A program made the translations under genes and the position numbers. A DNA stretch of 64,000 nucleotides from Trichosphaerium sp. ATCC 40318 (taxonomy: Eukaryota > Protista > Tubulinea), in assembly GCA_038496445.1 (NCBI GenBank), contig JALMLS010000092.1, positions 46,861 through 110,860 of the forward strand. Reading direction: 5' to 3'. Positions 17,639 through 45,067 of this stretch are shown here, piece after piece. A model generated the notes under the pieces. That model did not search any database. It had not been told where the DNA came from and saw nothing but the letters and a program-made list of their open reading frames with translations. How positions within the stretch are numbered: position 1 is the first letter of the stretch; the number at the start of each line of letters is the position of its first letter.

Positions 17639-20600
17639 TTAGACATGACAATATATTATGTTTGCAAGTATCAAAATGACAAAGCTGAGTGAGGAGATAG
17701 TTTCCCCAGCGCTTGTTTGTGAAGAACATTTATCAGGTCCAAAGCTCATGAGTATTCTAAAATATGTAAGATCTACGTAAGTAGTAACAGAAGTGTATAC
17801 CCAGTATTTGACTTTTGGGGAATGTCATTAAAACAATTCTTGTCTCTGTTTGTCTGTATATTATCTATGGCACCAACAATACAATTAGCAGCAACAAGGT
17901 TAATTAAGGTTAGCTGCGCTTGTGAAATGTCAACTGTAATTCTGGCAGCTATTGTTAAACAACCTACTGCAATATAAGAACTTAGAGTTTAATTTCAAAG
18001 AAGGTGCATTCCTGTAACTGTTAGTACGACATCATCTGTACCATAGTCAATTGGAAGTGTTATTGTTATCTGACTCACAATATTAAGATCACCTTGTATC
18101 AATATTGGTTGATCTATGATTGCTTGTTCTGGAAGTGTGATGTTGATTGGAAGGCTTCGACAAACTCCAGGACAATTGAGACTTCCCAATGTTTCACAAG
18201 CTATTCCTGACTCGTTACAAAAGTAATTTCCACTAAATGAATCAAATTGGTCACTATCACATGTTAATGCTCGTAAATGGGTAGCGGTAATGTATTGGAT
18301 TGGAATTACCAGGTATTGACTTCAAAAGGAACAGATGGACACCAAAATCTATTGTTGGATACATCTCTAATAGTTATATTTAGCACGTGATATTTGAACA
18401 AACACTTACAGTTCAGGAATATCTTTGAGGTATCCAGGCAAGGGTCCATACAATTCATTATCACTTAAATCTCTGTTGAGTAAATTTTTTAGTTTCGCTG
18501 ACAATGAAGTCTCTCTATGTACAGTTTTCGAATATGAGGCACGTCAACATTGTCTTTTGGAAGCTCTCCTTCAAATGAGTTTCTATTCAAAAGCAAAGTA
18601 TCAACTTTGAGCTGAAATGTTGATGCTGTGATAGATCCTGTAAACTTGTTTCCACTCAAATCTCTTGTGCACGAGTGTAAACACTTGTACTGTGGAGTGA
18701 TACGTACAGTTTATCTATTTCCACTTGTTTGTTAAACATTGGAATAGATCCAGAAAATAGATTATTAGCAAGAAGACTAGGAGAACATTAGCGCCTAATA
18801 AAAATAGGAAAAGCTACAATCAACAACTTACATTGTCCCAGCTTTGGCGTGTTTAAAATTGTCAAGGCCACCTGAGAACTTATTACCACTTAAATCCCTA
18901 TTAACTAAGTTAGTTTACATCACCACGTGGTAGAAGATGCGCGTACAAATCAACATTGTAATGAGCAATTGCTGGAGGAAGATCACCTGATAGATTGTTG
19001 TTAGGAACATATCTAAGGGGGTTACAGTAAGTAAAACATTCTCAATGACTTCCTCGGTCATACAAAATGTATAATATCTTGTCATTGTCAAAAGGTATTT
19101 GTGGTAGACTTCCAGAAAATAGGTTATCTCGAGCTCGGCTTTACAATAGAATTAGTATCAACTGCCAAGAACAAAGTCACGTACAAATCGTAGACATCAA
19201 ATATCCAATCTGGAATAGTCCCGTTCAACCTGTTATTTGCAACATCCCTTTCAAATACAGCGTCAAGATGTGTGTAATCAAAGAACGTACAAATAGATTA
19301 AAGGGAGGCTACCAAGGAAGTCAGGAAGGTTTCCTTCCAAATCACAATCAATAAGGCTCCTAAAAGATATTGGAATACGTCTGATAGCATACATGATAGT
19401 CATACAGATGTGTTAGTTTAGATAAACTTGCGAAGTTTTGAGGGATTTCACCCAGAGATTTCCCGTCAATAGACCTATGAGTATTAGTCAGTGCCTCCAT
19501 AATACCCTCTTTATTTTGCTCGGTGATTGTACAAGTTTATCATATCTTCAAACGCTGGTGGTACCAAACGTGATACATCCAAGTCATCTATCAGTGATTG
19601 TGTACCGCTGATGCGTCTGTTGGCGAGTGTTGAGTACTATATAAGTCTTAAACACGTACAGCACTTCTAAACCATTTCCGTATATTTGCTCAGGGATTGT
19701 CCCATGGATAGAGGTGAACTCAAGAGTACTAACGAAATAAATTAACACGGTAAAGGTGAAGGGCTTACAGTGTTTTCAAGGCAGATTCAGGAGGGACATA
19801 TGGAATAGGACCACTAATTGAGGTGTATGATAGAGCGCTTAAAAACAAAAGTAAGGTTGTCTTGTTCTAAAAAACACGTGATTTGTGTTGTACTTACAGA
19901 AGCTCAAGTTGAGGAAGACTTGTAAATAAATTTGTTGGAATGGTTCCCATTATGTTATCATCACGTGATATAGTTCTACACAGAAATTAGCATCATATTC
20001 AACAACAGTAACGAACAGTTCACGAAGTTGTGTAAGTTGCACGATGGATGCAGGAATAGTTTGTGGTACACTTTGAATATCTCCTAGGTGATATCGAAAT
20101 GAGACAACAAAAATATAAAAAAATAAAACTTCCTGCACCGCCATACCACGAAGAAATCTACAAAGAAGTAAACAATTTGCCACAGCAAATGAAAATATGA
20201 TGACGTACAAAATCTCAAGATTTGTGAGTTTTCCAGGATTCAATGTAAGCGTCCATGATATACTATCAGTGTCTAGGACTCTTGAAAAACGTTTTAGTAT
20301 ATACCAAAGAGGAGTGTTTCTTACAAAACAGTGAGTGAGTCCAATCCATCAAAGGCGTCATCACTCAACTTCAAATCAATGTTCTCACGTATACGCCTAA
20401 CACGTTTGGTTACAACAATACAAACGGCGGTTGACGCTAACACTTCAATTATGGCATCTGATGAATCACATATCACGCCGGCATACTTGCAGGGCTAATA
20501 ATGATATTTAAAAGCAAACACGGATAGTAAAATTGATAAATAAAGCCACGCACGTGAAATAAAGGGTCATGTGAGTACACATCGCTCAATGCCGTTATGA

Positions 20601-20685
20601 AATCGGTTTGGGCATACGATACATTCAGTATCACTAGAAGTAGAACCAAGAATGAAGTCATTGAAATAAGATTCATTCTCGACAT
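17639..20685 (-). CDS. Surface LRR protein 1 (signal peptide, Cys cap, about 18 plant-type LRRs, Cys-rich cap, juxtamembrane domain, predicted GPI signal)
   Basis: MSRMNLISMTSFLVLLLVILNVSYAQ; exons such as DLSGNKFSGGLDNF, YVPNNNLSGDLPPAI, DVSNNRFWCP; C-terminus SSQTSAGETISSLSFVILILANIIYCHV* with no cytoplasmic domain. Confidence 0.88.
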
Positions 20686-21784
20686 GTAGAGTGCTAAAAC
20701 GGTGTTGTTATAGACTCAACTTGAATTGGATGTGGTAGCTTTGTCAATGTAGTAACTTTAACGCTCCACAATACAATACAGTAGCCTAGAGAACTTGTAA
20801 CATAAAAAGGTACCTCTGATTGAAATGTTTTATCTCTAAAATTGTAGCTCACTTGTCACGTGACTTGACTTGAATTGGTAAAAATCCAAATGAGTAGTAC
20901 GCAACTTGTGGAGCCCAAGACTTTGTTCTATTCTTGATTTAAGCCATCTAGACTTATAAACTGGCTATTGGTAGTTAGTAAAACAGGATTTTGGTAGTTT
21001 ATATTTTAATGTAAGGGTTCAGAGACGCCAGATGACAGCTTCTTTATCTCTACGAGGTTGGGCCATTTTTGTTCACACTCCGACTGGTTCCCACATCTAC
21101 ACTTTTAACAATGACACGTGATACAAAGTTTCTTTACCACAGAAATTATTACGAACACGAAAGTTTTTTCTCACGTGACTATGTGAAGTCAGGAATGATT
21201 GACAGGTTGTTCCCACTTTTAAAATAAAAATACATGATATGGTTCACAAAAATGAGTATAAGCGTGGTGCGTGTAAGGCATACGGTATTATATTATTCAG
21301 TCTTTTAACCGTTTCATTCAAGGTTTGGCTTCTATTGTGACAAGACACTACAGTTCTTTATAGCTATCACCATATGAACATTCTTTGCCTGTCACTTTTC
21401 TTGTGGATTCAAAAGCCATCAGCAATGTGTATATATTATCAAGGCATATCGTACCTTAAACAGTAAGAAGACATAGCAGAGCTGAAAAGTTATGAGTTCT
21501 TTACAAAGACACCGTTAATTTGACCATAAAGTGTAAATACTCAAACGTTTGCTCGATATTTTGAAAAGAAAATAGCTTCCCAAAGGTAAAGAAGAGGCCC
21601 GAGATGAGAGGAGTTCTTTATTATGTTCACTCTGTCAGGCTTTAGTTCATTACACTAGGTTCTTTTCACGTGATATAGTTATGTTGACTAGTTATCTTTT
21701 GTTAAATGCAAGAACGGGTGTCTGAACTTAGCATATTATTGTATAATAAGCAGGAACGATTATTTTATTCTATTTTAGGTTGTC

Positions 21785-24700
21785 TCATACAAGGTCGTAC
21801 AATAGTATACTTATGAGAATGAAGATAATAAAGCTGAATTTAATTATTGTTTGTGAAGAACATTTGTCAGTGCCGAGGTTAAACAGCATTCTATAAATTA
21901 AATTGTTAGTTGCACAAAACAACAACGCAAGTCATACCCAAAGTTTGTTTTTTGTGGAACATCATCAAAACACTTGTCATCCCTGTCTGTCTTTACATTA
22001 TCAATAGTACCAACAATACAATTAGATCGAACAACGTTTATCACTCCAAGTTGTGCAACTGATTGTGGAACGACAACTGTAATTTCAGCTAATTCAAAAA
22101 TGTTTAAACAACCTAACATAGAATAAGAGGTAATGCGAAATTATGAATGCCGGACAAGCTACGTTCCTTCAACTGTTACTATGGTATCATCTGTACCATA
22201 ATCGATTGGAAGTGCTATTGTTGTCTGACTGATAATATTCAAATCACCTTGTATCACTATTGGTCGATCTATGATTGCTTGTTCTGGAAGTGTGATGTTG
22301 ATTGGAAGGTTTCGACAAACTCCAGGACAATTGAGACTTCCCAATGTTTCACAAGCTATTCCTGACTCATCACAAAAGTAATTTCCACCAAATGAATCAA
22401 ATTGATTACTATTACGTGTTAGTCTTGGTTGTTTTGATTGTTTTGAAATTACCAGGTATTGACTTCAAAAGGAACAGATGGACACCAAAATCTATTGTTG
22501 GATACATCTCTAAATAAATAAATATTTAGCACGTGATATTTGAACAAACACTTACAGTTGAGGAATATCTTTGAGGTATCCAGGCAAAGGACCATACAAT
22601 TCATTATCACTTAAATATCTAAACAAGTAAATTTTTTAGTTTCGCTGACAATCAAGTCTCTCTATGTACAGTTTTTGAATATGAGTCACATCAACATTGT
22701 CTTTTGGGAGTTCTCCTTCAAATGAGTTATTGTTCAAAAGCAAAGTTTCGGCATTGATCTGTAATGTTGATGCTGTGATAGGTCCTGTAAACTTATTTCC
22801 ACTCAAATCTCTTGAGTGTGTAAATTACCACATGGACTCATGATGGGACGTACATTGTGTTAATTTGTAGTTGTTTGTTAAACATTGGAATGGATCCAGA
22901 AAATTGATTATTAGCAAGGCGACTAGGAGAACTTTAGATAACAAATATTAAAGGTACAACATACATTTTAGTAGCTTTGGCTTGTTGTAAATGCTCAAGT
23001 CCACCTGAGAACTTGTTTCCGCTTAAATCACTATTAATTATTAAATAAGTCATTTAGGTCATCTTGTGGTAGAAGATGCGTGTACAAATCAACATTGTAA
23101 TGAGCAATTGCTGGGGGAAGGTCACCTGATAGATTGTTGTTAGGGACATATCTAAGGGGTTACTGTAAGTAACATTCTCAATGACTTCCTCGGTGACATA
23201 CAAAATGTTTAGGATCTTGTCATTGTCAAACGGTATTTGTAGACTTCCAGAAAATAGGTTATCTCGAGCTCGGCTATAAACAACAGAATTAACATCAACT
23301 TTTCTTATAAAAAATGTACAAATCTCTGATGTCAAATATCCAGTCTGGAAGAGTGCCATTCAACCTGTTACCTTCAATATCCCTTTCAAATAGAGTGTTA
23401 CAAAGTGTGTTGTGAATGAACGTACAAAAAGATTAAAGGGAGGCTACCAAGGAACTCAGGAAGGTTTCCTTCCAAATCACAATCAACAAGGCTCCTAAAA
23501 GTTGTTGGAATTAGTCTGTGTAGCATACATGATAGCCATACAGATGTGTAAGGTTAGTTAAAGTAGCAAAGTGTTGAGGAATTTGACCCAGAGGTTTTGT
23601 GTCAATAGCCCTATGAGTAATAATCAGCATCTTTAGTATCCTCTTCGTTTAGATTGTGTACAAGAATGTTATATCTTCAAACGCTGGTGGTACCAAACGT
23701 GATACATCCAAGTCATCTATCAGTGATTGTGTACCGCTGATGCGTCTGTTGAATTGTTTGATTAAAGAAGAAAAAATCAAACATGGACATACAAGTGCTC
23801 TAATCCATTTAAGTATATCTGCGCAGGTATTGATCCATTTACCGAGACGTACTCAAGAGAACTAATAAAAACAAACATAATTAAAATATGACTGACCTAA
23901 GTTCCAACGTACAGTCTCTTCAAGGCAGATTCAGGAGGTACATCTGGAATAGGACCACTAATTGAGGTGTATGATAGATCGCTTTTAATAAAAATTGAGT
24001 TTTCTTTGTTCTAAAAAACACGTGCTTTGTGTTGTACTTACAGAAGTTCTAGTTGAGGAAGACGCATAAATAAGTCTGATGGAATTTCTCCTGTTATGTT
24101 ATCATCACGTGATATAGTTCTAGTAAAACGAAGTTAGACACAATTTCTTAAAATAGTGACTCACAATTCTCGTAGTTTTGTTCGCCGCAAGATGCTTTCA
24201 GGAATTATTTGTGGTGCTTTTTGAATATCTCCTAGGCGACACCGAAATGAGCCAACTAAAAACTAAAAGAAAACTGTGCTCATGCGCCATACCACTAAGA
24301 AATCTACAAAGAAGTAAAACACTGTCAAAGCGACAAAATAAACTATGATGACGTACAAAATCTCAAGATTCATGAGCTTTTCAGGATTCAATGTAAGCGT
24401 CCATGATATGCTATCGCTGACTAGGACTCTTGAGAAGCGTTTTAGTAGATACCAAAAAGAGTGCTTCTTACAAAACCGTGAGCGATTCCAATGCATCAAA
24501 GGCGTCATCACTCAAGTTCATCTCAATGTCCCCATGCATTCGCCTACCGCTTTTGGTTACAACGATAAAACGTGGTTTCACACTAACACTTCTAATATGT
24601 TGTCGGATTCATCACATGTCACGCCAGTATGGTTGCAGGGCTAAAAATGTGATGTAAGTAAAAAAGCACAAAAACTAAATAAAGACACGCACTTGAAATA

Positions 24701-24815
24701 AAGGGTCATGTGAGTACGCATCTCTCAATGCCGTTATGAAATCTGTCTGGGCATACGATACATTCAGTATCACTAGAAGTAGAACCAAGATTGAAGTCAT
24801 TGTAGTAAGATTCAT
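21785..24815 (-). CDS. Surface LRR protein 2
   Basis: Colinear paralogue of copy 1; MNLTTMTSILVLLLVILNVSYAQ ... CSSQTIIKFSFIIFILISILLYDLV*. Confidence 0.88.
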
Positions 24816-25084
24816 CCTATCAATAAACGTGTTAATTACAATCAACCTGAAAGAAGAAGCTTGTTGATTTGCGTGTCAATTTAGTAGCTTTTAACGCTCA
24901 ACAAGGGAACTTGGAACATAAATTACGCTACTGAAACCTTTCATCGCTAGCAATTAATCGCAGTCACGTGCTCAGTATGGAATAGGTTTTGGTTCGTTTA
25001 CGAATAGTGCGAAACTCGGTGTTCGGTACCGTAAACTGCGGTTTTTTCCCTTGATTGTAAGCCCTCTTGTATAATGAAAGAGTC

Positions 25085-25410
25085 TGTTGGTTGTTTACGC
25101 TTCGAATCGTCTACTAAGCGATTAATATATATACAGATACGTATGTGCCATGTACTGTTCGAAGTGTATGTCACGGGTTCAAAGACGCAAGATGAGTCGT
25201 TTCTTTATTATTCCGCTAGTTTTGTGTTTTTTAGGAGGTATAGTCCAGATTTTTGTTCACACTCCGTCTTTTTTGGTTCAGTCTAAAACTGGTAATACTG
25301 TCCACGCACCCATATCTAAACTTTGAAAAAATATCACGTGAAGCATAGTTTCAAAGCCAATTTCAGGAAATTGTTACGAACACTGACGTCAAACATTCTC
25401 TTGGGCACGT
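25085..25410. promoter_or_regulatory. Conserved non-coding block upstream of the LRR genes (other copies at about 20960-21155 degenerate, 28920-29225, 32835-33160, 37250-37565 and 61170-61425 inverted)
   Basis: About 300-bp block lying 270-600 bp upstream of each ATG; this copy contains CACGTG (25335) and TGACGTCA (25384). Regulatory role is inferred from position only. Confidence 0.45.
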
Positions 25411-25697
25411 ATCAAAATCATTTGCTACAAAGACACAACGTGTACCACCTGAACTGAGCAAATTCTGAATTCATGTGAATTCAATAAATCACGTGAATAA
25501 TATTCTAAAAAAATGAACAATACACGCGCTGAAATGGATTACTTTCAATGACTTGAGGTCTATTGGTATGACTTATTTCCATTGGTGATTGGCAAAGTAT
25601 CTCTGAACACATGTCATCTGAGCAGTCATTGTTTCAAAAGTCTAATATACAATGACGTGCATATACAAATGGTTTATTCAGTTATACATGTGTGGTC

Positions 25698-28600
25698 TTA
25701 CACAAGGTCGTACAACAGTATACTTATGAGAACGAAGACAATAAAGCTGAATTTAATTATTGTTTGTGAAGAACATTTGTCAGTGCCGAGGTTAAACAGC
25801 ATTCTGTAAATTAAATTGTTAGTTGCACAAAACAACAACGCAAGTCATACCCAAAGTTTGTTTTTTGTGGAACATCATCAAAACACTTGTCATCCCTGTC
25901 TGTCTTTACATTATCAATAGTACCAACAATACAATTAGATCGAACTATGTTTATCACACTAAGATGTACGACTGATTGTGGAACGACAACTGTAATTCCA
26001 CTTGATTGTAACATGTACAAACAACCTAACATAGAATAAGGGGCGAAATTATATGCAATTTACGTTCCTTCAACTGTTAGTATGACGTCATCTGTACCAT
26101 AATCAATTGGAAGTGCTATTGTTATCTGACTCACAATATTAAGATCACCTTGTATCACTATTGGTTGATCTATGATTGCTTGTTCTGGAAGTGTGATGTT
26201 GATTGGAAGGCTTCGACATACTCCAGGACAATTGAGACTTCCCAATGTTTCACAAGCTATTCCTGACTCGTTACAAAAGTAATTTCCGCCAAATGAATCA
26301 AATTGGTCACTATCACATGTTAATGCTCGTAAATGGGTAGCGGTAATGTATTGGATGGAATTACCAGGTATTGACTTCAAAAGGAACAGATGGACACCAA
26401 AATCTATTGTTGGATACATCTCTAAATAAATACAATATTTAGCACGTGATATTTGAACAAACACTTACAGTTCAGGAATATCTTTGAGGTATCCAGGCAA
26501 AGGTCCATACAATTCATTATCACTTAAATATCTATCAAATACTTTTTAGTTCACACGATGTAGCCATGGTTATGTACAGTTTTCGAATATGAGGCACAGT
26601 AATATTGCTATCCAATGGAAGCTCTCCTTCAAATGAGTTATTGTTCAAAAGCAAAGTATCGGCATTGATCTGTAGTGTTGACGCTGTGATAGGTCCTGTA
26701 AACTTGTTTCCATTCAATTCTCTTGTATGTGTAAATAACCTTGTACAGAACAAATTACTTGACGTACATTGTGTTAATTTGTATTTGATTGTTAAACATC
26801 GGAATGGATCCAGAAAATTGATTATTAGCAAGGTGACTAGGAGAACTTTAGATACGACATATGGGGTACAACATACATAAATATAGCTTTGGCTTGTTGT
26901 AAATGCTCAAGTCCACCTGACAACTTATTTCCTCTTAAATCCCTACTATTAAGTCACCAAGAGCGAGTGAGAAGAATTGTGTACAATTCAGTATTGTATT
27001 GAGCAATTGCTGGAGGAAGATCACCTGATAGATTGTTGTCTGAGAGCTCGCTAAATAATTCAAACAGTGAGTGAAACAAGCACTTACAAAAGAAACGTAC
27101 ACACGGAATGCTAACTTATTTGAGTCAAAAGGTATTTGTGGTAGACTTCCAGAAAACGAGTTTTGGCTTGCTCGGCTTAGACAGAATTAGCATCAAGGGT
27201 TTCCAAATTATATGTACAAGTCTCTGATATTAAATATCCAATCTGGAAGAGTGCCATTCAGCTTGTTTCGTTCGAGATTCCTGTACGTGTAAGTGCAAAC
27301 GGGTTTTTAACAATCAACGTACAAAAAGATTAAAGGGAGGCTACCAAGGAAGTCAGGAAGGTTTCCTTCCAAATCACAATCAATAAGGCTCCTAAAAGGT
27401 GTCGGTGGAATACGTCTAATGATAGCCGTACAGATGTGTTAGTTTAGATAAACTTGCGAAGTTTTGAGGGATTTGACCCAGAGGTTTTCTGTCAATAGAC
27501 CTATGAGTAATAATCAGCGCCTTTATTTGTTCTATTATATATGTGTACAATGCCTTCATCATTTCAAACGCTGGTGGTACCAAACGTGATACATCCAAGT
27601 CATCTATCAGTGATTGTGTACCGCTGATGCGTCTGTTGAATTGTTTGATTAAAGAAGAACAAAATCAAGAATACATGGACATACAAGTGCTCTAATCCAT
27701 TTAAGTATATCTGCGTAGGTAATGGTCCAGTTACCGATATGTACTGAAGAGAACTATCAATCTAATTAAACACATAGTAAACGTGTAGGGCTTACAGGCT
27801 CTTCAAGGCAGATTCAGGAGGTACATCTGGAATAGGACCACCAATGTCAGTGTATGATAGATCGCTTTAACAAAAAGTAAGTTTTTCTTGTTCTAAAAAA
27901 CACGTGATGTACTTACAGGAGTTCTAGTTGAGGAAGACTTGTAAATAAATTAGTTGGAATTGTTCCTGCCATGTTATCATCATATGTTATACTTCTGTAA
28001 ACACAATTAGAGAATAAGTCAGCATAACAATCACTTACAACTCTCGGAGTTTTGTTAGCTGTAAGATGGATGGAGGAATTGAGTGTTGTACTCTTTGAAT
28101 ACTCCCTAGGCGTAAGATATGTGAGGCTATGTATCTATAATAACCAAACAAAGTAGTAGTTACCACGAAGAAATCTGTTTGAAGTGTAAACAATTTGATA
28201 CCACGAGAAACAAAAACAAGTGATGACGTACAAAATCTCAAGATTAATGAGTTTTCCAGGATTCAATGTAAGCGTCCATGATATACTATCGGTGTCTAAC
28301 TGTCTTGAAAACGTTTTAGTACATAAAAGAGAAGTGTTTATTACAAAACCGTGAGTGAGTCCAATGCATCAAAGGCGTCATCGCTCAAGTTCAAATCAAT
28401 GTCCTCACGTATTCGCCTAAAACGTTTGGTTACAACAACAAACAACGCAAACAACGTATTTTCGCACTAACACTTCACATATGGCGTCGGATTCATCACA
28501 TGTCACGCCAGTATGGTTGCAAGGCTAAATTGGGATGTAAGCAAAAATAGTACCAACATAAATAAAGCCACGCACGTGAAATAAAGGGTCATGTGAGTAC

Positions 28601-28698
28601 GCATCTCTCAATGCTGTTATGAAATCGATTTGGGCATACGATACATTTATCATCACTAGAAGTAGAACCAAGATCCAAGTCATTGTAATAAGATGCAT
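25698..28698 (-). CDS. Surface LRR protein 3
   Basis: Colinear paralogue; MHLITMTWILVLLLVMINVSYAQ ... LLYDLV*. Confidence 0.88.
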
Positions 28699-29529
28699 TT
28701 GACGTAGAAACTACTAACGACGCGTTACAGAGAAGGAAAGAACTAATTGAAATGGTTGATGAAATTTACTCAAAATAGCTGGAATAATTGTGGTCGCTAC
28801 TGCTACCGGTCACGTGTATGAAATAGGTAAAAATTGGCTTCAAGTTTGCTAATATTGCGAAAACATGCGGTACCTTAAACTGTTGATTCTTCCTTTGATT
28901 AGACCTCCTAGCTACGCCTTGATATGTTGAATCCTCTAGTAAGCGATTAATTATGTAATAGATTGTATGTACCATGTACTATTCAAGGTGTACTTAAAGG
29001 GTTCAGAGACGCAATATGAGTGGTGTCTTTATTTCTCCGCCTGTTTTGTGTTTCCTCGGAGGTTGTTAATAATTTTTGTTCCCCGTCTTTTTTGGTTCAA
29101 TCTAAAACTGGTAATACTGTCCACACACCCGTATCTAAAGTTTGAAAAAATATCATGTGAAGCGAAGTATCAAAGCCAATTTCCGGAAGTTGTTACGAAC
29201 ACTGACGTCAACATTGTCGTCTTGCTGTTTCTTTCTCGTTCCAGTTTCTTAAGGGATTGAGAGTAACAGTTTCTCCGAAGTTGTATTCCATGTACCTGAC
29301 TTACGGATACGGATAAAGGGTCAAGACCACTTTCTTACAGATACGGATAAACGTTTCCACATTCGCCGAATGAGAACAATAATGGCAAATTGTTCCTAGA
29401 TTATGAACCTAGCAAATCAGAATGCCCAGCTCTGCAATCAAACTTGTCTATTTGTTGTGAGCAATAAGTAGCACACGTTTCTTTCGACAAAATTACATGA
29501 GTTTCTGATTTATTTCGTGCTAGATTGTC

Positions 29530-32500
29530 TCATACAAGGTCATACAATAGTACACTTACGAGAATGAAGATAATAAAGTTGAATTTAATTATTGTTTGTG
29601 AAGAACACTTGTCAGTGCCGAGGTTAAACAGTATTCTATAAATTCAATAATTAGTTGTGCACAAAACACAGTAGCGCACGTACCCAAAGTCTTTTTGTTG
29701 TGGAACGTCATCAAAACACTTGTCATCCCTGTCAGTCTCTATATTATCAAGGGTACCAACAAAACAATTATATCGAACAACGTTTATCACACCAAGTTGT
29801 GCAACTGATTGTGGAACGACAACTGTAATTCCACTTGATTGTAACATGTACAAACAACCTAACATAAATAATAAGAACGCAAAGGAAATTATATTCAATT
29901 TACGTTCCTTCAACTGTTAGTATGACGTCATCTGTGCCATAATCAATTGGAAGTGATATTGTTATCTGACTCACAATATTAAGATCACCTTGTATCACTA
30001 TTGGTTGATCTATAATTGCTTGTTCTGGAAGTGTGATGTTGATTGGAAGGTTTCGACATACTCCAGGGCAATTGAGACTTCCCAATGTTTCACAAGCTAT
30101 TCCTGACTCGTTACAAAAGTAGTTTCCTCCAAATGAATCAAATTGGTCACTACTATGCGTTAGTCTTGTTTGTGAGAGTTGTTTTGATGGAAATTACCAG
30201 GTATTGACTTCAAAAGGAACAGATGGACACCAAAATCTATTGTTGGATACATCTCTAAATAAATACTAGATTTAGCACGTGATATTTGAACAAATACTTA
30301 CAGTTGAGGGATATCTTTGAGGTATCCAGGCAAAGGACCATACAATTCATTATCACTTAAATCTCTAAACAAACTGTTTTAGTTCGCAGATGCTGAAGTC
30401 TTGAGGCTGTACAGTTGTTGAATATAGGGCACAGTAATATTGCTATCCAATGGAAGTTCCCCTCCAAATGAGTTATTATTCAAAAGCAAAGTATCGGCAT
30501 TGATCTGTAATGTTGACGCTGTGATAGGTCCTATTAACTTGTTTCCATTCAATTCTCTTGTGCGCGAATAAGTTTGTAAAGAACCAATTGGAGGGACGTA
30601 CATTCTGTTAATTTGTGCTTGATTGTTAAACATCGGAATGGATCCAGAAAATTGATTATTAGCAAGGCGACTACAGTCAGTACATTAGATTAAATACTAT
30701 GTAAGTATCAAAAGGATCTCTACGTACATAAATCTAGTTTTGGCTTGTTGTAAATGCTCAAGTCCACCTGACAACATATTTCCATTTAAGTCCCTATCAA
30801 ATAAGTCATTTACATAGACAGTAAAACTGGTTGAAGGCTCGTACACTTCAAGTTGATATTGACCAATAGCTGGAGGAACATCGCCTGATAGGTTGTTATC
30901 AGAGATCTTTCTAGAATATTCAAGCAATCAGTCTGGCGTAAGTGAAGTACAAGTGCGAACATACAAAAAGTAGAATCCATGCTTATTTGAGTCAAAAGGT
31001 ATTTGCGGTAGACTTCCAGAGAACGAGTTCCGGCTTGCTCGGCTTAGATAAAGAATTAACATCAACTTCTCAAAATTATATGCATGTACAAGTCACCGAT
31101 ATTAAATATCCAATCTGGAAGAGTGCCATTCAATCTGTTATCTTCAATATCCCTTTTAAATGTTTAAGAAGTGATCACATAGTAGTGCATATACATAGTC
31201 AACAAACGTACAAAGAGATTAAAGGGAGGCTACCAAGGAAGTCAGGAAGGTTCCCTTCCAAATCACAATCATCAAGGCGCCTAAAATCATCAATAAGAAG
31301 ACCATTACACGAGAGTCATACAGATGTGTTAGTTTAGTTAAAGTAGCCAAGGTTTGAGGGATTTGACCCAGAGGTTTGTTATCAAAAGATCTATGAGTAT
31401 TAGTCAGCGCCTCTTAATATCCTCTTCATTTTGCTCGACGGTTCGTACAAGTAAGTTATATTTTCAAATGCTGGTGGTACCAAACGTGATACATCCAAGT
31501 TATCTATCAGTGATTGTGTACCACTGATGCGTCTGTTGAATTGCTTGGTTAAAGAAGAAAATCAAGAATACATGGACGTACAACTCGTCTAATCCATTTA
31601 AGTATATCTGCGCAGGTATTGATCCATTTACCGAGACGTGCTCAAGAGAACTAATAAAACAAACATAATTAAAATATGACTGACCTAAGTCCAAACGTAC
31701 AGTCTTTTCAAGGCAGATTCAGGAGGTACATGTGGAATAGGACCACGAATTGAGGTGTATGATAGATCGCTTTTAATAAAATTGAGTTTTCTTTGTTCTA
31801 AAAAACACGTGATTTGTGTTGTACTTACAGAAATTCTAATTGAGGGAGACTTGTAAATAAATTAGTTGGAATGGTTCCTGTTAGATTTTCATCGAATGAT
31901 ATACTTCTGTAAACACAATTAGGATAAGTCAGAATAACAATCACTTACAACTCTCGGAGTTTTGTTAGCTGTAAGATGGATGGAGGAATTGAATGCTGTA
32001 CTCTTTGAATACTTCCTAGGCGTAAGGTATGTACATTAATCGGTATCTCCTAACTTACCAAGAAGAAATCTGTTGAAGTGTAAACAATTTGATACCACGA
32101 GAAACAAGAAAAGAAAAACAAGTGATGACGTACAAAATCTCAAGATTAATGAGTTTTCCAGGATTTAATGTAAGCGTCCATGATATACTATCGCTGTTTA
32201 GTTCTCTTACGAGTGTTTTAGTAGATACCAAAAAAAGAGTGTTTCTTACAAAACCGTGAGTGAGTCCAATGCATCAAAGGCGTCATCACTCAAGTTCATC
32301 TCAATGTCCCCACGTATACGCCTACCACGTTTGGTTACAACAACACAAACGCAAATAATGTATTTTCGCACTAACACTTCACATATGGCGTCGGATTCAT
32401 CACATATCACGCCAGTATGGTTACAAGGCTAAATTGGGATGTAAGTAAAAATAGTACCTACAAAATAAACGTCACGCACGTGAAATAAAGGGTCATGAGA

Positions 32501-32599
32501 GTACGCATCTCTCAATGCCGTTACAAAATCAATTCGGCCATATGATACATTTATCACTAGAAGTAGAACCAAGATCGAATTCATTGTAATCCGATTCAT
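29530..32599 (-). CDS. Surface LRR protein 4
   Basis: Colinear paralogue; MNRITMNSILVLLLVINVSYG ... LLYDLV*. Confidence 0.85.
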
Positions 32600-33995: not shown

Positions 33996-36900
33996 TTATA
34001 CAAGGTCGTACAATAGTACACTTACGAGAATGAAGATAATAAAGTTGAATTTAATTATTGTTTGTGAAGAACACTTGTCAGTGCCGAGGTTAAACAGTAT
34101 TCTATAAATTAAATAATTAGTTGCTCAAAACTGTAACGCAAGTCATACCCAAAGTCTTTTTGTTGTGGAACGTCATCGAAACACTTGTCATCCCTGTCAG
34201 TCTCTATATTATCGAGGGTACCAATAAAACAATTATATCGAACAACGTTTATCACACCAAGATGTATGACTGATTGTGGAACGACAACTGTAATTCCACT
34301 TGATTGTAACATGTTTAAACAACCTAACATAAATAATAAGAACGAAAAATATATGCTTAGCATTTACGTTCCTTCAACTGTTAACATGACGTCATCTGTA
34401 CCATAGTCAATTGGAAGTGATATTGTTATCTGACTCACAATATTAAGATCACCTTGTATCACTATTGGTTGATCTATGATTGCTCGTTCTGGAAGTGTGA
34501 TGTTGATTGGAAGGTTTCTACACACTCCAGGACAATTGAGACTTTCCAATGTTTCGCAAGCTATTCCTGACTCATTACAAAAGTAGTTTCCACTAAACGA
34601 ATCAAATTGATCACTATTACGTGTTAGTCTTGTTTGCGAGAGTTGTTTTGAAATTACCAGGTATTGACTTCAAAAGGAACAGATGGACACCAAAATCTAT
34701 TGTTGGATACATCTCTAATAGTTATATTTAGCACGTGATATTTGAACAAACACTTACAGTTCAGGAATATCTTTGAGGTATCCAGGCAGAGGACCATACA
34801 ATTCATTATCACTTAAATCTCTATCAAATACTGTTAGTTAAAGTGTAACTTAGTTTGAAAACTTCTCATGGCAGTACAGTTGTTGAATATAAGGCACAGT
34901 AATATTGCTATCCAACGGAAGTTCTCCTAATGAGTTATTGTTCAAAAACAAAATGTTGGTATTGATCTGTAATGTTGACGCTGTGATAGGTCCTGTAAAC
35001 TTGTTTCCATTCAATTCTCTTGTGCACGAATAAGTTAGAATAGAACGACTTATTTGGACATACATTGTGAAGATTTGTGCTTGGTTGTTAAACATCGGAA
35101 TGGATCCAGAAAATTGATTATTAGCAAGGCGACTAGGAGAACTTTAGATACGACATATAGGGTACAACATACATAAATATAGCTTTGGCTTGTTGTAAAT
35201 GCTCAAGTCCACCTGACAACATATTTCCTCTTAAATTCCTACCAAAGTCATTTACATAGGGAGTAACTGGTTGAAGGCTCGTACACTTCAAATTGATATT
35301 GACCAATAGCTGGAGGAAGATCACCTGATAGATTGTTGTCCGAGATCTCGCTAACAGCAATCAGTCTGGCGTAAGTGAAGTACAAGTGCGAACATACAAA
35401 TAGTTGAATCCATGCTTATTTGAGTCAAAAGGTATTTGTGGTAGACTTCCAGAAAACGAGTTCCTGCTTGCTCGGCTTACAAAAAGAATTAACATCAACT
35501 TTTCCAAGAATAAAGCCACGTACAAATCTCTGATGTCAAATATCCAATCTGGAAGAGTGCCATTCAATCTGTTATCTTCAATATTCCTTTCAACTGTTAA
35601 GAGGTGCAATATACATCAACAAACGTACAAAGAGATTAAAGGGAGGCTACCAAGGAAGTCAGGAAGGTTTCCTTCCAAACCACAATCATCAAGGCTCCTA
35701 AAATCGTCAATAAGAAGACTATTGCACGAGAGTCATACAGATGTGTTAGTTTAGTTAAACTTGCGAAGTTTTGAGGGATTTGACCCAGAGGTTTTCTGTC
35801 AATAGACCTATGAGTATTAGTCAGCGCCTCTTTAATATGCGATGGTTGGTACAAGTTAGTCATATCTTCAAATGCGGGTGGTATCAAACGTGATACATCC
35901 AAGTCATCTATCAGCGATTGTGTACCACTGATATGTCTGTTGAATTGTTTGATTAAAGAAGGATAATCAAGTATACATGGACGTACAAGTGCTCTAATCC
36001 ATTTAAGTATATCTGCGCAGGTATTGGTCCAGTTATGGAGGTGTACTGAAGATAACTAATAATAAACAAACATAATTAATATATGACTGACCTAAGTTCC
36101 AACGTACAGTCTCTTCAAGGCAGATTCAGGAGGTACATGTGGAATAGGACCACTAATTGAGGTGTGTGATAATTCGCTTAAAAAAATTAGTTTGTTGTGT
36201 TCTAAAAAAACACGTGATTTGTGTTGTACTTACAGAAATTCTAATTGAGGAAGAGTTGTAAATAAATTCGTTGGAATTGTTCCTGCCATGTTAGAATCAT
36301 AAGTTATACTTCTGTAAACACAATTAGAGAATAAGTCAGAACAATCACTTACAACTCTCGGAGTTTTGTTAGCTGTAAGATGGATGGCGGAATTGAGTGC
36401 TGTACTTTTTGAATATTCCCTAGGCGTAAGGTATGTACATTACTCGGTATCTCCTAACTTACCAAGAAGAGATCTGTTTGAAGTGTAAACAATTTGATAC
36501 CACGAGAAACAAAAAAAACCAAAAATATAATGACGCACAAACTCTCAAGATTCACGAGCTTTCCAGGATTCAATGTAAGCGTCCATGATATACTACCAGT
36601 GCTTATATCTCTTGAAAAGCGTTTTAGTACATACAAAGAAGAGTGTTTCTTACAAAACCGTGAGCGATTCCAATGCATCAAAGGCGTCATCACTCAAGTT
36701 CATCTCAATGTTCCCATGCATTCGCCTACCGCTTTTGGTTACAACACAAACGTTTGGCTTCACACTAACACTTCACATATGGCGCCAGATTCATCACATG
36801 TCACGCCAGTATGGTTGCAGGGCTAAAAATGGGTTGTGAGCAAAAATAGCACCTACATAAATAAAGCCACGCACGTGAAATAAAGGGTCATGAGAGTACA

Positions 36901-36997
36901 CATCGCTCAATGCCGTTATGAAATCGGTTTGGGCATACGACACAGAAAATATCACTAAAAGTAGAACCAAGATCCAATCCATTGTAATAAAATTCAT
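33996..36997 (-). CDS. Surface LRR protein 5
   Basis: Colinear paralogue; MNFITMDWILVLLLVIFSVSYAQ ... LLYDLV*. Confidence 0.88.
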
Positions 36998-38108
36998 CTC
37001 TAACTCGTAGAAACTAACAACGTGAGAGAAGAACTAATTTTATCGTTTTGTTATTATTTAGCAAATTGAACTTTTGAACACAATGTAGCCGGAACAATTG
37101 CTACTGAGCGTTGGCCGCTACATATTAATTTTGCAGGTCACTTATCACGTGGTAATACGTATTTAATTTAATTTCATGTTTACCAATATTACAAAACGAT
37201 GCGGTACCTTGAGCTCTTGGATTCTTCCGTAGATAAAACTGGTACAGGTATTTGGTAGTCTGTATGTTGAGTCCTCAAGCGATTAATAAACAGTTATGTA
37301 TGTGCCATGTACTATTAAGGTACGTTAGGGGTTTAGATACAAAACGTGATGAGACGTTTCTTTTTAATTCCGCTTGGTTTGCCTTTTCGTCGGAGGTTGA
37401 TCACATAAGTTTTGTTCACTCCGTCGTGTTTTGGTTCAATCTAAAACTGGTAATACTGTCCACGCACCCATATCTAAACTTTGAAAAAATACATCACGCG
37501 AAGCGAAGTTTCAAAGCTAGTTTCCGACAAAATTGTTACGAACACTGACGTCAACATTGTCGTCTGCTGTTTCTTCCTAGTTTCAGTTTGTTAATGGATT
37601 GAGAGTAACAGTTTCTCCGAAGCTGTATTCCATGTTCTAATTAAATTTCATAGCAGTTTGTTTGGACTTACAGATATAAGGAAGTCTAGCTTACAGATAT
37701 GCCAAAAGGCGATCAAGACCACTTCCTTACACAGATACGGATAAACGGTTCTAGCGTTCATATTATATGAGAACAATACTGGCAAATTGTTCCGAGTTTA
37801 TGAACCTAATCCTCACTATTAGTGGACTCAAAGAAAGGTCTAAGGGAGATTATTTGTTTAGGTTTAGAGAAAGAAGACTTGACTGTTTGTGGCTTATCAA
37901 ATGACTGTACAATTACCTCTAGAGATGGCAGAAATACCCGTCCTATACAGCTCCGAAAAAACGCAAAGCATCTGTCCGTATATGGTCCAAACGGCTCGCT
38001 GTCAAAAGTATTTGCCATCAACAAAATTCATTGTAACATTGAGGTACTGGTTTATTGAGCAACGAACTGTATGTTTATAAAATGAAATGGTAAATACTGA
38101 TGACACTG

Positions 38109-41018
38109 TTAGCACAGTGTGAAAAAAATAACAAGAATAAATACAAAGAAACTGAATCTTGTGACGTGATGTCCATAGCATGTATTACCGCCAACATTAA
38201 GTGTTATTCTGCGAAAAGAGTTAGCAACATGAGAGTAAAACAAGCACAAAGAAGATATTACCCCAGATTGGTTCTAAGTGCCTTGTCATTGAAACACTGC
38301 TCGTCACTTGTTGTCTTAATATTATCAATGTCACCAATGATACAATTTGCTTTGATAAGATCAATAGTGGAAGGTCTCGTCACTGATGGTGGTGTAGTAA
38401 CAATCAATTCACTTTGTAGTGTTAGGCAACCTAAAATCAAGATCAGAAAATAGCTAGCAAAGTGTATTTACTTTCCTGTAACAGTGAGTATTGTGTCGTC
38501 TTTACCAAAGTCAGGAGGAATTAATATTGTTGTAGGAGTCACAATATTCAGGTCGCCTTGTATCACTGTTGGCTTATCTATTATCGTTCCTTGCGGAAAT
38601 GTGATGTTTACTGAAATTGGAGCTTTGGGAGAGTTGGGTACAAAGCCCCTACACATTTCAGAGCAATTGAGACTTCCCAATGTTTCACAAGTTATTCCTG
38701 AGTCATCACAAAAGTAATTATTTGCAAAGTCGTCAAACTCAACACTATCACCTGTTAGTATTGTAGTGAACATAAATCAGTTCAAAATCAATATGATGGT
38801 ACCAATTATTGACTTGAAACGTAACCACTGGGCACGAAAAATTATTGTCTTTAACTCTACTAATAATGTACCAGTTAGCGCATAATTGACAATGAATCAT
38901 GGACAACTTACATGGTTACATCTTTGAAGAAGCTTGGCAAAGGTCCACTAAATTCGTTGTGAATTATTGATCTAATAACCTCCAATTAATAAAGGTTATC
39001 TCGAGCTATTGAAGTACATGTTAGTAGATCTTGTGCCATTTAAATGTTCTAGTCCTCCAGAAAAGTGATTGGTAGCCAAATTCCTAAATCATTACTATGA
39101 GGTTGTCGAGAAGTTGACGTTAAAGTGAAGGACGTACACCCAGGTGTACTGACCAACTGCAGGTGGTATATCACCAGATAAGTTGTTTCTATAAACAGTG
39201 CTAACATAGCAATTAGAAGAACAGAAACCTAGAGGCGCTTGTTTTTCAAACAACCACAAACTTACAAACGAAAAAAATTCTTTGTTGGATCTAAAGGTAC
39301 TTGAGGAAGGCTCCCAGAGAACAAATTATCTTGAAGTTGCCTTTAAAAACAACCGTTAGAATCCAATACAATTAAAATAACCATGTACAAAGTATTGACA
39401 TTGAATACCCAATCTGGAATAGTTCCGTTCAACATGTTGTCACTAAGATTCCTTACAACAAAAAATTAGGTTCTTCTATACGATGCATTTTACCGTACAA
39501 GTCATATAAAGGAAGGTTACTAAGAAAATCAGGGATTGGACCCTCCAATCCACATCTGTATAGTTTCCTAGTTGGATAAAGGTTAAAGAGAAACGAACTG
39601 CTGTTTCTTGTTGTACAAATTTTGCAGTTTAGTTAGATTAGCAAAATGGGCTGGTATTTTAGTTAAAGGTAAATTATCTATGGCCCTAAAGCAGTTAGTT
39701 ATAAAGAGTAATTGATGTACTCATTTAATGTACAATCCTTTCATGTTAGAAAAAGTTGGTGCCACCACACGTGACAGATCCAACTCAGCTAAAAGCATCG
39801 GTTCGCCTTCAATATCCCTAATTGATTATAAGTTAGCGAATGTAGATACTAAGTTAAGGACATACAGTCGCTCTAATCCGTTAGTGTATATTCCTTGAGG
39901 TATTGTTCCATTCATTTCCCCCGAATTGTATGAGATAATACTTAAAGTGTAGTTAAAACAATAGCACTGCAACAGGATTGAACTAAAAAAAACCGAAGCA
40001 TTGAAACACAAAAAATAGAGTAATTTGGGACTTACAGAGAGGATAAAGGATGTCCAACAGGCACATCTGGAATAGATCCGCTTATTGACGTCTCTTTCAG
40101 AGCACTATAAAATGTCTTTGAGTATAGAAGTAAAAACAAAATCATGCACTTACAGATACCGAAGTTTGGGAAGGCTTGTAAACAAATTTGATGGGATAGT
40201 TCCTGTAATATCTTTATTAAATGTAATAGATCTATAAAACACCTCAATAAGCTTGACATCAGAACAAGGCGCGTACAAGGCTGTTAGGTTCTTTAACTGT
40301 GTGATGGAGGCAGGAATTGAGCTCGATCCTTGAACATTTCCTAGGTACTTTTTAGCCTAGTATAACAAATTCAATGTCACATCATCTTCGTACTAAGATA
40401 TCTACGGGGAAAAATTAATATGGTCAGACAATATACGTTCGTCAATAACGTACAAAGACTCAAGATTAGTGAGCTTCCCAGGATTCAATGTGAGGTTCCA
40501 TGAGAATGTATCAGTCCAAAGGTTAATGAGAATTCTTAAACAAATGTAAACTTAAGGGCGGAACAATAATTTCTCCTACAAACTTGTGAGAGAATCCAAG
40601 GCATCAAAAGCGTCATCAGATAAGTTCAGTACTATAGAGCGCTGTATGTTCCTACAGATCTTCAGACGCAGAAGGTAAGTACTTTTGAGCCTGTGACCGA
40701 AAAGCTTTTTTAGATTGAAAAAAAAGCACGTAATTTAGTAAAAATAAAACGTGATTTTTTAACTAACACTTCTAAAATGTTGCCATATCCATCACAAGTT
40801 ACGCCAGTATCATTACAAGGCTAAAATTGAATCAACCAAAAAAATAGTTTGGTAGAACGTAAAACGCTTAGCAAACAATAATGGTTACGCACGTGAAACG
40901 AAGTGTCATTCTGAGTTGCTTTCAATGCAGTTATAAAATCTGTTTGAGCGAAAGATAACTCTGCTATCCCAAGTAAAAGTAACAGAAATAAGGAAAAGCT
41001 GACGACTCTGATATACAT
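38109..41018 (-). CDS. Surface LRR protein 6 (divergent short subfamily)
   Basis: MYIRVVSFSLFLLLLLGIAELSFAQTDFITAL; same exon order but two LRR exons are absent; ends TRFSFFVFILVIFFTLC*. Confidence 0.85.
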
Positions 41019-41629
41019 TGTTTGAGCTGTATGGCTTATCGATCACGCAAACAAAAGTTGTGAACAATCGCGTTGAAATAATTTTACCGGTATTGAAAAA
41101 AAAGGAACTTCTGATTTCAATACACAGCACCGCCATTTCTAGAGCTCTTGAAATGAACAACATATTTGTTACGATTTGCTCAAGCGTTTATTTCATACAA
41201 GAATGCCATTACTGAACTCTTTGTCTTCTCTGATCACGTGTCTTCATTGTTGTTATTAATTGGGCTCAAAGGAAGTTCTTTGGGAGATCCTCATTTGATG
41301 GTTTTAGAAGATAACAACTTTAAATGGTTGGGGCTGATCTAGCGATTGTTCGAGCAGGTTACTTCCAATCATTAACATTTAGTCAAACATGAAAAGTGTC
41401 CCAAATCAGACAAAGTGTCCCATATGTTTTTTTCACAAACGGAGCTCTAACAAAGCAAACCGAGGCCACTGCGCACAAACAATGTGTGACTGCGTAAAAT
41501 TTCGAATTATGAAATGAGGAGCATGTATGTTACGGAACCTAGTTTAGGTTTGAGGCACACGCCTACAAATGTACATGAATTACGTACAAAAGAGCACGTG
41601 ATAACAAACACAGAGAATTTGAACTAAAA

Positions 41630-41860
41630 AGTTGTCGTAATATTATCAATATCGCCAATGATAAAATTGGCTTTGATAGATCAATTGTGGAAGGTCTTCT
41701 CACTGTTGCTGGTGTAGTAACAATCAGCTCGCTTTGTAGAGATAGGCAACCTAAAATTAAGAATTACTCTTAATAAGTTTAAGTTCCTGTTACAGTGAGT
41801 ATTGTGTCGTCTTTACCAAAGTCAGCAGGAATTAATAGGTCGCCTTTTATCATTGTTGGC
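41630..41860 (-). pseudogene. Decayed remnant of a copy-6-like LRR gene (juxtamembrane-domain exons only)
   Basis: Sequence closely follows about 38310-38575, with internal deletions. Confidence 0.75.
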
Positions 41861-42247
41861 CGGCGAAGAAAATGTTACATTTTATTTGTGTTCGAAAAGG
41901 AAGTTTATTGACCAAACAACTTCTTCGACTTTTCTCGAATTGCACAACTTCTTGTGCGTTTGTCTTTGCCTCAATAAACTTGTCAATCAACATACTCGAT
42001 GTCTCTCGATGACTCTTCTCTCGTTGCAGGTATGCCCAAGGACAATTACCTCAACGCACTCGAAATTCATGTGATGTTCAAATTAATTAATTCTTGTGAT
42101 AATATCTCTAAGTTCCCTCAGATAGCACCTTTCTTTCAATCATCAATTAATTATAACACGGACACCGTTTAAACTAAAAGAACTTGTCTATTTATAAAAT
42201 GCTATTTTTAAATAAATACTAAAACTTCAGTAACATTAGACTACATA

Positions 42248-45067
42248 TTAGCAGAGTGTTAATAAAATAACAAGAATAAACACAAAGAAACTGAATCTTG
42301 TAACATGATGTCCATAGCATGTATTACCGCCAACATTTAAGAGTATTCTGCGAAAAGAGTTAGCAACATAAGAGTAAAACCAGTACTAAGATGTATTACC
42401 CAATATTGGTCCTAAGTGCATTGTCATTGAAACACTGCTTGTCGCTTGTTGTCTTAACATTATCAACGTCTCCAATAATACAATTTGATTTGATAAGATC
42501 AATACTGGAAGGTCTCCTCACTGATGGCGTATTAACAATCAATTCACTTTGTAGCGATAAACATCCTAAATCAAGAATTAAACAATCAAAAATAAGAATA
42601 AATAGAGCGTACCTTCAACAGTCAACAATGTATCGTCATCATCGAAGTCAAGTGGAACAGTGAGAATTGTTTGATTGACAATATTAAGATCTCCTTGTAT
42701 CACAGTTCTTGCATCTATTACTGTATCTTCTGGAAGTGTGTAGTTTCCTGCGACAACAATTGGAAGGCTCAAACACATTCCAGGGCAGTTCAGACTTCCT
42801 AATGTTTTACAAGTTATTCCAGACTCATCACAAAAGTAATTATTAGCAAAGTTTTGAAACTCATCGCTATCACGTGTTAGTATTTGAGACAAATCAAAGA
42901 ATGTTAAGAACGTTGAGATATTACCAATTATTGACTTCAAAAGGAACAGATGGGCACCAGAAGTTATTATCATGAACAGTTCTAAGGATATAACTGTTAG
43001 ACTGTTTGTTACGTTTAGCTGGATCTAGCAAGAACTTACAAAATACTTATATCCTTGAAGAAGCTCGGTAGAGGTCCAAAAAAATTGTTATGAATAATGG
43101 CTCTGTAAAGCGAATCAACGAACGTTGGCATAGAAGTTATAAACTATTGGAAAAAAGGTTGTACATTCTCGAAGCTCTGGTTCCTTCAAGACGCTCTAAT
43201 CCGCCAGAAAAGCTATTTATGTCCAAGTTCCTGTATCAAAATTACGTTCATATATGACATTGATGTGACGTACACTCTTGTGTATTGGCCTACTGCAGGT
43301 GGTATATCACCTGAGATGTTGTTTCTGAACACCGAGCTAACATAATAAGCGGCAGAACAGAAGTCATCAAGCTCTTGTTTCTAACACTTACAAACGAAAG
43401 AATTTCTTTGTTGGATCGAAAGGTACTTGAGGAAGGCTTCCAGAGAACAAATTTGCTGGCATTCGCCTAATAAATATGAGTCTTAGACTCACATATGATT
43501 GCAATAAGTAGTAAGTGTACACGTCACTGATGTTGAAGATCCAATCTGGAAGAGTACCGTTCAACTTGTTGCCTCCAAGGTGCCTAAACAAGACGATGAG
43601 TTAATTTTGAAGAGACTGAAATATGCGTACAAAAAAGTTAAAGGGAGATTTCCAAGGAAATCAGGTATTGCTCCTTCCAACTCACATTCCCAAATACTCC
43701 TAAAAGTTGTATGTTAGCATAAGGATGCAATTTCTTAAATTATACAGGTGTCTTAGGTTAGATAGAAAAGCAAAGTGGTCAGGTATTTTAGTTATCGGTG
43801 TGTCATCAATAAAACTAAACAAAGTCATTAGTTTAAGGTAATATCACTTATAACGTACAATGAAGTTAAATTCTGAAACGCTGGTACAGCCACACGTGAT
43901 AGATCCAGTTCAGCTGAAAGCAACGGTTCACCTAAGATTTCCCTTTGCTTATGTTAGCAACAGTGAACCAAAAAGCAAAGACATACAAGTGTGTCAATCC
44001 TTGAACATAGATTCTATTTGGTATCGTTCCGTTCATAATTCCAGAGTTATGAGCAATTGTACTAAAGTCGACAAGAAGTTAAACAACAGAAAAAAAAGGA
44101 GAAATAGGAAGAATTGTAAAGTACAGTGAGTGCAATGCAGAATTATTTGGTACATCAGGAATAGAACCGCTTATTTGAGTATTTGCTATTCGCCTTTAAA
44201 ACTCTTTAGTGATTTTAGTTTTCAGATACATATGTACTTACAGAAGTTCTAATGAAGTAAGACTTGCAAATAAATTTGAAGGGATTGTTCCTGCTAGGTT
44301 AGGATCGCCATCAATAGTTCTGAAAAGTACAATAAGTGAGATTGATAGAAAGAACGAACTACGGACAATTCTCTTAGCTTTGTTAGCTGCGTAATGGATG
44401 CAGGTATTGACTCAGCTCCATGAACATTTTCTAGGCGCTTTTAGACGTCGCATGAGAGCAAAAAGGATGATTTTCATCGGTCTTGCTTAATGTTGCTTAC
44501 CAAGAAATCTGCGGAAAAGGTAAGCTTCCTGAGTGTATCCATGAAAGCAACTATGACGTACAAAATCTCAAGATTTGTAAGCTTCCCTGGATTCAATGTA
44601 AGCCTCCACGTGATCGTCTCAGGGCTATTTAGAACTCTTGAATAGGTGTTATAATTACGCGGAAATAATATTTGTCCTACAGAGTTGTGAGAGAATCCAA
44701 GGCATCAAAAGCATCATCAGTTAAGTTCATTGCAATACTAGTCTCTATTCGCCTAAATTTATTTTCAGTTTTTACCAAAAAAAACACGTGATTTTGCGAA
44801 AATAAAACGTGAGTGTCACGAACACTTCCAAAATGATGTCAGATCCATCGCAAGTTACGCTAGTATGATTACACGGCTAAATTTATAATGAACAAAGAGT
44901 TGGGGTACTCTAATTGATGTTTGCTAGCAAAAAAATTAATTGCGCACGTGAAATAAAGGGTCATTTGAGTGTGCTTCTTTCAACGCAGTTACAAAGTCTG
45001 TCTGTGCGCAAGATACTTTAAATACCCCCACTAACGCAATAACTATGATAAATATTCTGATAAACAT
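42248..45067 (-). CDS. Surface LRR protein 7 (divergent short subfamily)
   Basis: MFIRIFIIVIALVGVFKVSCAQTDFVTAL; exon set as in copy 6; ends TRFSFFVFILVILLTLC*. Confidence 0.85.

Follow-up and report, generated by a model that had tools for sequence, protein, structure and literature searches.

A stretch of 64,000 nucleotides (nt) from the protist Trichosphaerium sp. ATCC 40318 (contig JALMLS010000092.1, positions 46,861 to 110,860 of the forward strand; hereafter the window, in whose own positions all coordinates are given) carries an array of seven tandem genes, A to G, for leucine-rich repeat (LRR) proteins. These probably belong to a family of LRR binding proteins that are tethered to the membrane, a family specific to the lineage and shaped by birth-and-death evolution. 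Each gene is complete and its product consists of a signal peptide, an LRR solenoid, a Cys cap, a stalk and a tail without an intracellular part. The copies exchange patches, the residues of the concave face change about twice as fast as the rest, and genes D and F are transcribed and spliced in a fixed exon order. Most surprising is a GA-AG intron that the family carries at the boundary to the anchor. It is well supported as an intron, and GA-AG introns have been described best in animals, to which this protist does not belong. Recognition of prey, parasites or kin by free-living protists is poorly known, and the array offers a concrete case, an orphan receptor family that is expressed and bears the marks of a binding repertoire. 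As far as the sequence allows us to judge, this is an orphan architecture made from known parts, a receptor-like protein family under patchwise diversification.

Gene models and intron phases

Copy B was annotated by hand, and a spliced protein-to-DNA aligner then refined the models of all copies. Self-comparison of the window (GC content about 36%) gave repeat units of 3-4 kb in the array, and the spliced models gave seven genes, all on the minus strand and each open from start to stop, with products of 580-655 residues. Genes A (20676-17639, 652 residues), B (24815-21785, 653 residues), C (28698-25698, 653 residues), D (32599-29530, 653 residues) and E (36997-33996, 655 residues) have 23 exons and 18 LRR units, while F (41018-38109, 589 residues) and G (45067-42248, 580 residues) are without exons 17 and 18 and so have 21 exons, with 15 LRR units. 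An earlier note, made from the sequence alone, had described seven tandem genes with a signal peptide, a Cys cap, 15-18 plant-type LRRs, a second Cys cap, a stalk and a hydrophobic tail; the spliced models confirm this, and of the ends it gave to the array, 17639 is where A stops and 45067 where G starts. The motif NNRFWCP which it assigned to the C-terminal cap is exact only in A-E. Protein identity is 71-86% among A-E, which form one group, 65% between F and G, and 51-56% between the two groups. An assembly artefact is ruled out, because the copies are only 51-86% identical in protein and independent transcripts match D and F.

Introns of the array have a median length of 48 nt, and 129 of the 150 are in phase 2 (14 are in phase 1 and seven in phase 0), with one phase string common to all copies. 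The phase-2 introns usually lie within the codon of the first conserved Leu in LxLxxN, and the LRR exons are 57-84 nt long. The description of the array as one LRR per symmetric phase-2 exon is accordingly true for most exons (16 symmetric phase-2 exons in A-E, 14 in F and G), with the exception of exon 18, which holds two repeats, and of the asymmetric micro-exon 5 and exon 6. Micro-exon 5 (24293-24303 in B; 11 nt in A-E and 8 nt in F and G) runs from phase 2 to 1 and exon 6 from phase 1 to 2, and they can be skipped in frame only as a pair. Exons 17-18 (22670-22922 in B) hold three LRRs in A-E and are missing in frame from F and G; this one in-frame loss or gain of three repeats is the single evolutionary use of the exon symmetry. 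Exons 21-22 (21938-22408 in B) encode the C-terminal cap and a predicted beta-helical stalk and are interrupted by intron 21, and exon 23 (21785-21890 in B) encodes a spacer and the terminal hydrophobic tail, without a cytoplasmic part.

Patchwise exchange between the copies

In 876 of 880 comparisons the best match of an exon in the other copies was the same-numbered exon, therefore the repeats are not interchangeable between positions, and a structure of one repeat per exon need not imply shuffling. Within A-E the closest pair of copies shifts from exon to exon. Incompatibility between neighboring sites was 0.38 in comparison to 0.50 +/- 0.008 in shuffles (p<0.001), and 0.38 in comparison to 0.49 +/- 0.011 when only coding sites were taken. 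Informative sites clustered in this way bear the mark of gene conversion or unequal crossover. Exon 20, which encodes the last repeat and the start of the C-terminal cap (e.g. 22453-22509), is identical across A-E, while its neighboring exons differ by 2-9%; the identity reflects either recent homogenisation or strong constraint. Neither an incomplete germline gene nor a cassette field was present within the window. As read from the copies themselves, and from the decayed remnant Fp between F and G and the broken copy H (both described below), this would be birth-and-death evolution with a heritable patchwork and not somatic assembly.

At the five exposed positions around the LxL strand 35% of sites are invariant, in comparison to 67-77% elsewhere. 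Omega is 0.7-1.0 for the concave face and about 0.45 elsewhere; the value of 0.45 is rejected for the face, a value above 1 is not required, and a counting method agrees. Positive selection on the face is not supported, since omega is not above 1. The comparison of sequences nevertheless supports a faster-evolving binding face of the kind that is expected of recognition proteins.

Protein architecture and probable role

Hydropathy analysis gave hydrophobic peaks at both ends of all seven proteins, the tail being the last element of each. In A-E it is preceded by small residues. Each protein has 6-15 N-glycosylation motifs. From hydropathy only, we infer that A-G are anchored through glycosylphosphatidylinositol (GPI). 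Homology searches were made with the exon references and with the proteins P0001 and P0002 as queries. A cDNA-derived protein of the family had its best PDB matches in MIK2, FLS2 and HAESA (E from 3e-31 to 2e-28), which identifies the LRRs as plant-type. A profile of the cap-and-stalk exon found one relative among 1.84 billion representatives, apparently from the same species, and no plant relative among them. Two matching proteins were found in a word search, both in one Joint Genome Institute (JGI) sample of apparently the same species, and there was no match in a metagenome scan or in an Atlas search with P0002. The predicted structure of the C-terminal part has a mean pLDDT of 56, with about 70-80 in the stalk and below 50 in the cap. 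The stalk is modeled as a short beta-helix similar to autotransporter autochaperone regions (Z 8.4, rmsd 3.2 over 109 residues, a middling score), a likeness between folds, one of them predicted, that shows no function.

The gene models support the earlier view of a surface LRR family without a signaling domain and with modular phase-2 exons, as far as surface location can be predicted. In the explanation we favor, a GPI anchor would replace the tail, the stalk would hold the solenoid at a distance from the membrane, and outside ligands, most likely the surfaces of microbial prey or parasites, would be bound by the concave face. Because the protein cannot signal alone, it would act as a capture receptor or co-receptor. 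The repertoire would be built over generations as genes are duplicated, exchange tracts by gene conversion or unequal crossover, and acquire point changes, with phase-2 exons mainly permitting in-frame gain or loss of repeats. Several points weigh against this explanation. Relaxed constraint explains the face as well as diversifying selection does, given that omega of the face is not above 1, and recombination biases the estimate of omega. The cleavage-site region of the tail is, in our own reading, less typical in F and G than in A-E. Finally, assembled contigs drop rare isoforms, hence exon skipping at a low level would not show in the transcripts described below.

It is rather unlikely that the proteins are instead adhesion, kin-recognition or variable-coat proteins, which bind or shield the cell's own surface and are not receptors for microbes. 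The lack of a signaling domain, the number of N-glycosylation motifs and the adhesin-like beta-helical stalk are all in accordance with such a role, and so is a weak resemblance (E 4e-4, below the cut-off) to the Dictyostelium ComC LRR domain. However, nothing positive ties the proteins to self ligands, and several copies are found in the same RNA samples, which, for bulk samples, gives no hint of expression of one copy at a time.

Transcripts and exon order

Transcripts were available as contigs of three runs (X1-X3, from two studies) sharing a small part of words, which were placed on 21720-27700, and as two JGI cDNA contigs from a third sample, L001 and L002. The X1-X3 contigs coincide with exons, and their joints fall on predicted introns. 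At most of the listed positions the variants they carry are those of gene D; for one loose end the match is to F, in 30 of 30 letters. D- and F-like contigs are present together in X1 and X2, along with contigs similar to the detached copy H (see below). L001 and L002 represent spliced cDNAs and belong to the F group. The 3' half of L002 is 99% identical to F, with nine differing positions in 870 nt and none of them in exons 22-23. Positions 1-1050 are identical in L001 and L002 and derive from a paralogue resembling F that carries two frameshifts, one near 82 and one near 765; this common 5' part is either an expressed dead copy or an assembler chimera. One X1 contig with loose ends at 22479 and 26518 shares the cap region only and continues into LRR-like sequence absent from the window, which points to more distant members of the family in other parts of the genome.

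The earlier note had proposed a VLR-like combinatorial repertoire and had named exon skipping as something to be sought in RNA. Consecutive exons, without a skip or reordering, were found in the contigs followed (among the joints listed and in L001 and L002), from which rare forms would drop out. It is very improbable that the symmetric exons yield a combinatorial repertoire inside the cell, be it through exon skipping, trans-splicing or somatic recombination: the 16 or 14 such exons per gene, the skipping of this kind in brown algal ROCO genes (PMC11378527) and NLRP3 (PMC6642158), and some contigs that look chimeric between copies (L002 and record 13 of X3) speak for it, but the repeats are position-specific and in fixed order, the genes in the window are complete and without cassettes, and chimeric contigs are the usual product of short-read assemblers on paralogues.

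A GA-AG intron directly before the anchor exons

Intron 21 sits directly before the anchor exons. Among the 150 introns of the array 144 have a GT donor, and GA is found only at intron 21 of A (17964-18011, 48 nt), B (22113-22166, 54 nt), C (26026-26067, 42 nt), D (29859-29907, 49 nt), E (34324-34371, 48 nt) and F (38431-38475, 45 nt), all of which end in AG; in G a GT-AG intron of 47 nt (42566-42612) has the same position and phase. The GA donor, which the earlier note missed in six of seven genes, is also present in L001 and, at 41786, in Fp, a remnant on the minus strand with decayed 3' parts of exons 21-22 (41630-41862, the lower bound being approximate), i.e. in eight sequences in total. 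Standard gene prediction would truncate six of the seven genes at this intron and miss their anchor.

The intron is removed despite its GA start. X1 and X3 join 26024 to 26067 (in D-like transcripts, whose joint is placed on intron 21 of C), and X2 holds both exons adjacent in one record. Of the four equivalent placements of the cut at the X1/X3 joint only GA..AG is splice-like. In L002 the exons flanking the GA intron of F are joined. The transcripts do not display the intron that was removed from their own allele, but the genomic copies of D and F both carry GA. A sequencing error is ruled out by the presence of GA in eight sequences, one of them cDNA, and A-F are not truncated pseudogenes, since exons 22-23 are open in all copies and there are spliced transcripts. 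Spliced alignment found no alternative GT donor that keeps the frame, and the RNA joint fixes the place.

All eight GA donors (A-F, Fp and L001) follow an exonic AG and precede an A, which is the context of animal GA-AG introns (PMC7072748), while 115 of the 144 GT donors of the family follow a T. Five of the eight keep ACGT, the commonest donor core here, at +3 to +6. For comparison we used the TOR kinase gene at 50561-60530 (plus strand), which has about 50 introns in an ab initio model whose true start may lie further upstream. The model has one GCACGT donor, at 51283, and no GA donor among its 50 introns, some junctions of which are uncertain. GA was thus not seen there as a genome-wide class, and judging from this gene it is probably not common in the genome. 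We suppose that two features make GA acceptable to the major spliceosome, namely the exonic AG in front of it and the ACGT core of the genome's donors, which is mostly kept; this spliceosome would lean on the flanks and tolerate change at +2, and intron 21 would be a weak, tolerated site that is sometimes left in.

In a tree of exons 21-23, G groups with the F group with a support of 100. Rooting between the two groups would make GA the older state and G the copy which changed to GT. The copies that share GA are about 1.2 synonymous substitutions per site apart. However, in 14 of 35 cases at fourfold-degenerate sites an A has likewise persisted throughout A-F. Conservation of GA is thus no higher than neutral and is no evidence of selection; selection for GA is not supported.

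Both forms of RNA exist, the spliced one in X1, X2, X3 and L002, and the retained one in L001 only, which is of a different paralogue from outside the window. In L001 all introns are removed, including the one downstream, except intron 21. The frame stops two codons into it and ends in TVTGT-stop, and for this reason the deposited protein P0001 is without the tail. Retention in A-F would bring a stop after 2-5 codons. In G the retained GT intron would add 11 mostly hydrophobic residues before a stop, a possible alternative tail that is probably a by-product of a T-rich intron.

One possibility, which we regard as rather unlikely, is that the GA donor is a regulated switch, the spliced form giving an anchored protein and the retained form a secreted LRR protein (a decoy, opsonin or agglutinin). 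It is compatible with a diversifying family. Intron 21 is the only non-GT position among the 150 introns and lies where the anchor is about to be encoded, it alone is kept in L001, GA is common to copies as distant as given above, and the whole LRR solenoid and C-terminal cap survive retention. On the other hand, the retained form is known from a single contig, and the two frameshifts in its 5' part indicate that a dead copy or a partly processed RNA may be its source. Retention would cut the stalk fold within a predicted strand and remove the second half of the stalk; an early stop upon retention is found at most other introns as well; retention of GA through evolution needs no selection, as the neutral sites demonstrate, and G has GT. 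A tolerated slow intron is more likely than a regulated switch. It is unlikely that the full combination is true, namely a family-wide GA donor that switches between a GPI-anchored receptor and a secreted antibody-like form, together with gene conversion that diversifies the binding face. If it were, a single cell would have, through another mechanism, the functional counterpart of the membrane and secreted forms of VLRB or immunoglobulin.

We consider it quite improbable that the weak GA intron limits expression, with nonsense-mediated decay of retained transcripts tuning the dose of each copy. The premature stop does lie more than 150 nt before the last exon junction, but the retained form and the frameshifted transcript persist enough to be assembled.

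Relation to known systems

The plant-type LRR consensus and the Cys caps are the same as in plant LRR receptor-like proteins and the ectodomains of receptor kinases (MIK2, FLS2, HAESA, ERL1, TMM), and plant receptor-like proteins are likewise without a kinase. Array proteins differ from plant receptors in having no transmembrane helix and cytoplasmic tail, the hydrophobic stretch running to the last residues, and in adding a predicted beta-helical stalk and nearly one intron per repeat. VLRB of lamprey and hagfish has the same capped LRR solenoid with a variable concave face, a stalk and a terminal hydrophobic tail. It has membrane and secreted forms, which for the array proteins are only possible. 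In contrast to VLR, the LRRs of the array are plant-type and the stalk is predicted to be beta-helical and not Thr/Pro-rich. VLR genes are incomplete in the germline, without coding introns, and assembled somatically from hundreds of cassettes (PMC3308329), whereas the array genes are complete, intron-rich and of fixed order.

Phase-2 LRR exons are known in Tetrahymena, in brown algal ROCO genes and in vertebrate NLR and hormone receptors, so they are not new. The shuffling exon arrays of ROCO genes and Tetrahymena share with our array one LRR per phase-2 exon (PMC11378527, PMC6564038) and variable sites on the concave face. Their exons are uniform (72 or 90 nt), clonal, shuffled and variable in number, while those of the array are 57-84 nt, position-specific and constant in order, with one insertion or deletion of two exons, and belong to a protein of the secreted pathway.

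GA-AG introns of Eurytemora, Oikopleura and human FGFR and ITPR1 have GA in the same place, behind an exonic AG and before an A (PMC7072748, PMC4176328), but that of the array is one orthologous intron of one family and not a genome-wide class (0 of 50 TOR introns). For the acetylcholinesterase H/R forms, which share the layout seen around intron 21, splicing gives a GPI-anchored form and read-through of intron 4 a soluble one (PMC5388418). The protein is unrelated to those of the array, and its read-through follows a complete domain, whereas retention of intron 21 cuts the stalk.

Other features of the window

A detached 5' copy with exons 1-8, copy H, lies on the plus strand at 61655-62517 and breaks off beside a Mutator-like transposase open reading frame (62987-63574, minus strand; Atlas score 0.94, PF20700 clusters). 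A 5-nt duplication is present at the break. Two genes that are 82% identical, at 868-3524 and 6081-8727 on the minus strand, encode surface proteins that cross the membrane once and have a linker rich in Pro and Thr and a stalk containing Cys. This stalk may be related to that of the LRR family (score 66-84, with a shuffled maximum of 79), so that a stalk shared with these neighboring transmembrane genes is suggestive only. Where the LRR genes have intron 21, these two genes carry a phase-1 intron with a GT donor. An intronless open reading frame at 9202-10155 (plus strand) has an F-box-like start and short LRRs of 22 residues (Pfam LRR_6) and is probably a member of an F-box/LRR family. The hexamer CACGTG gives the impression, on inspection, of being unusually frequent across the window, introns of the array included.

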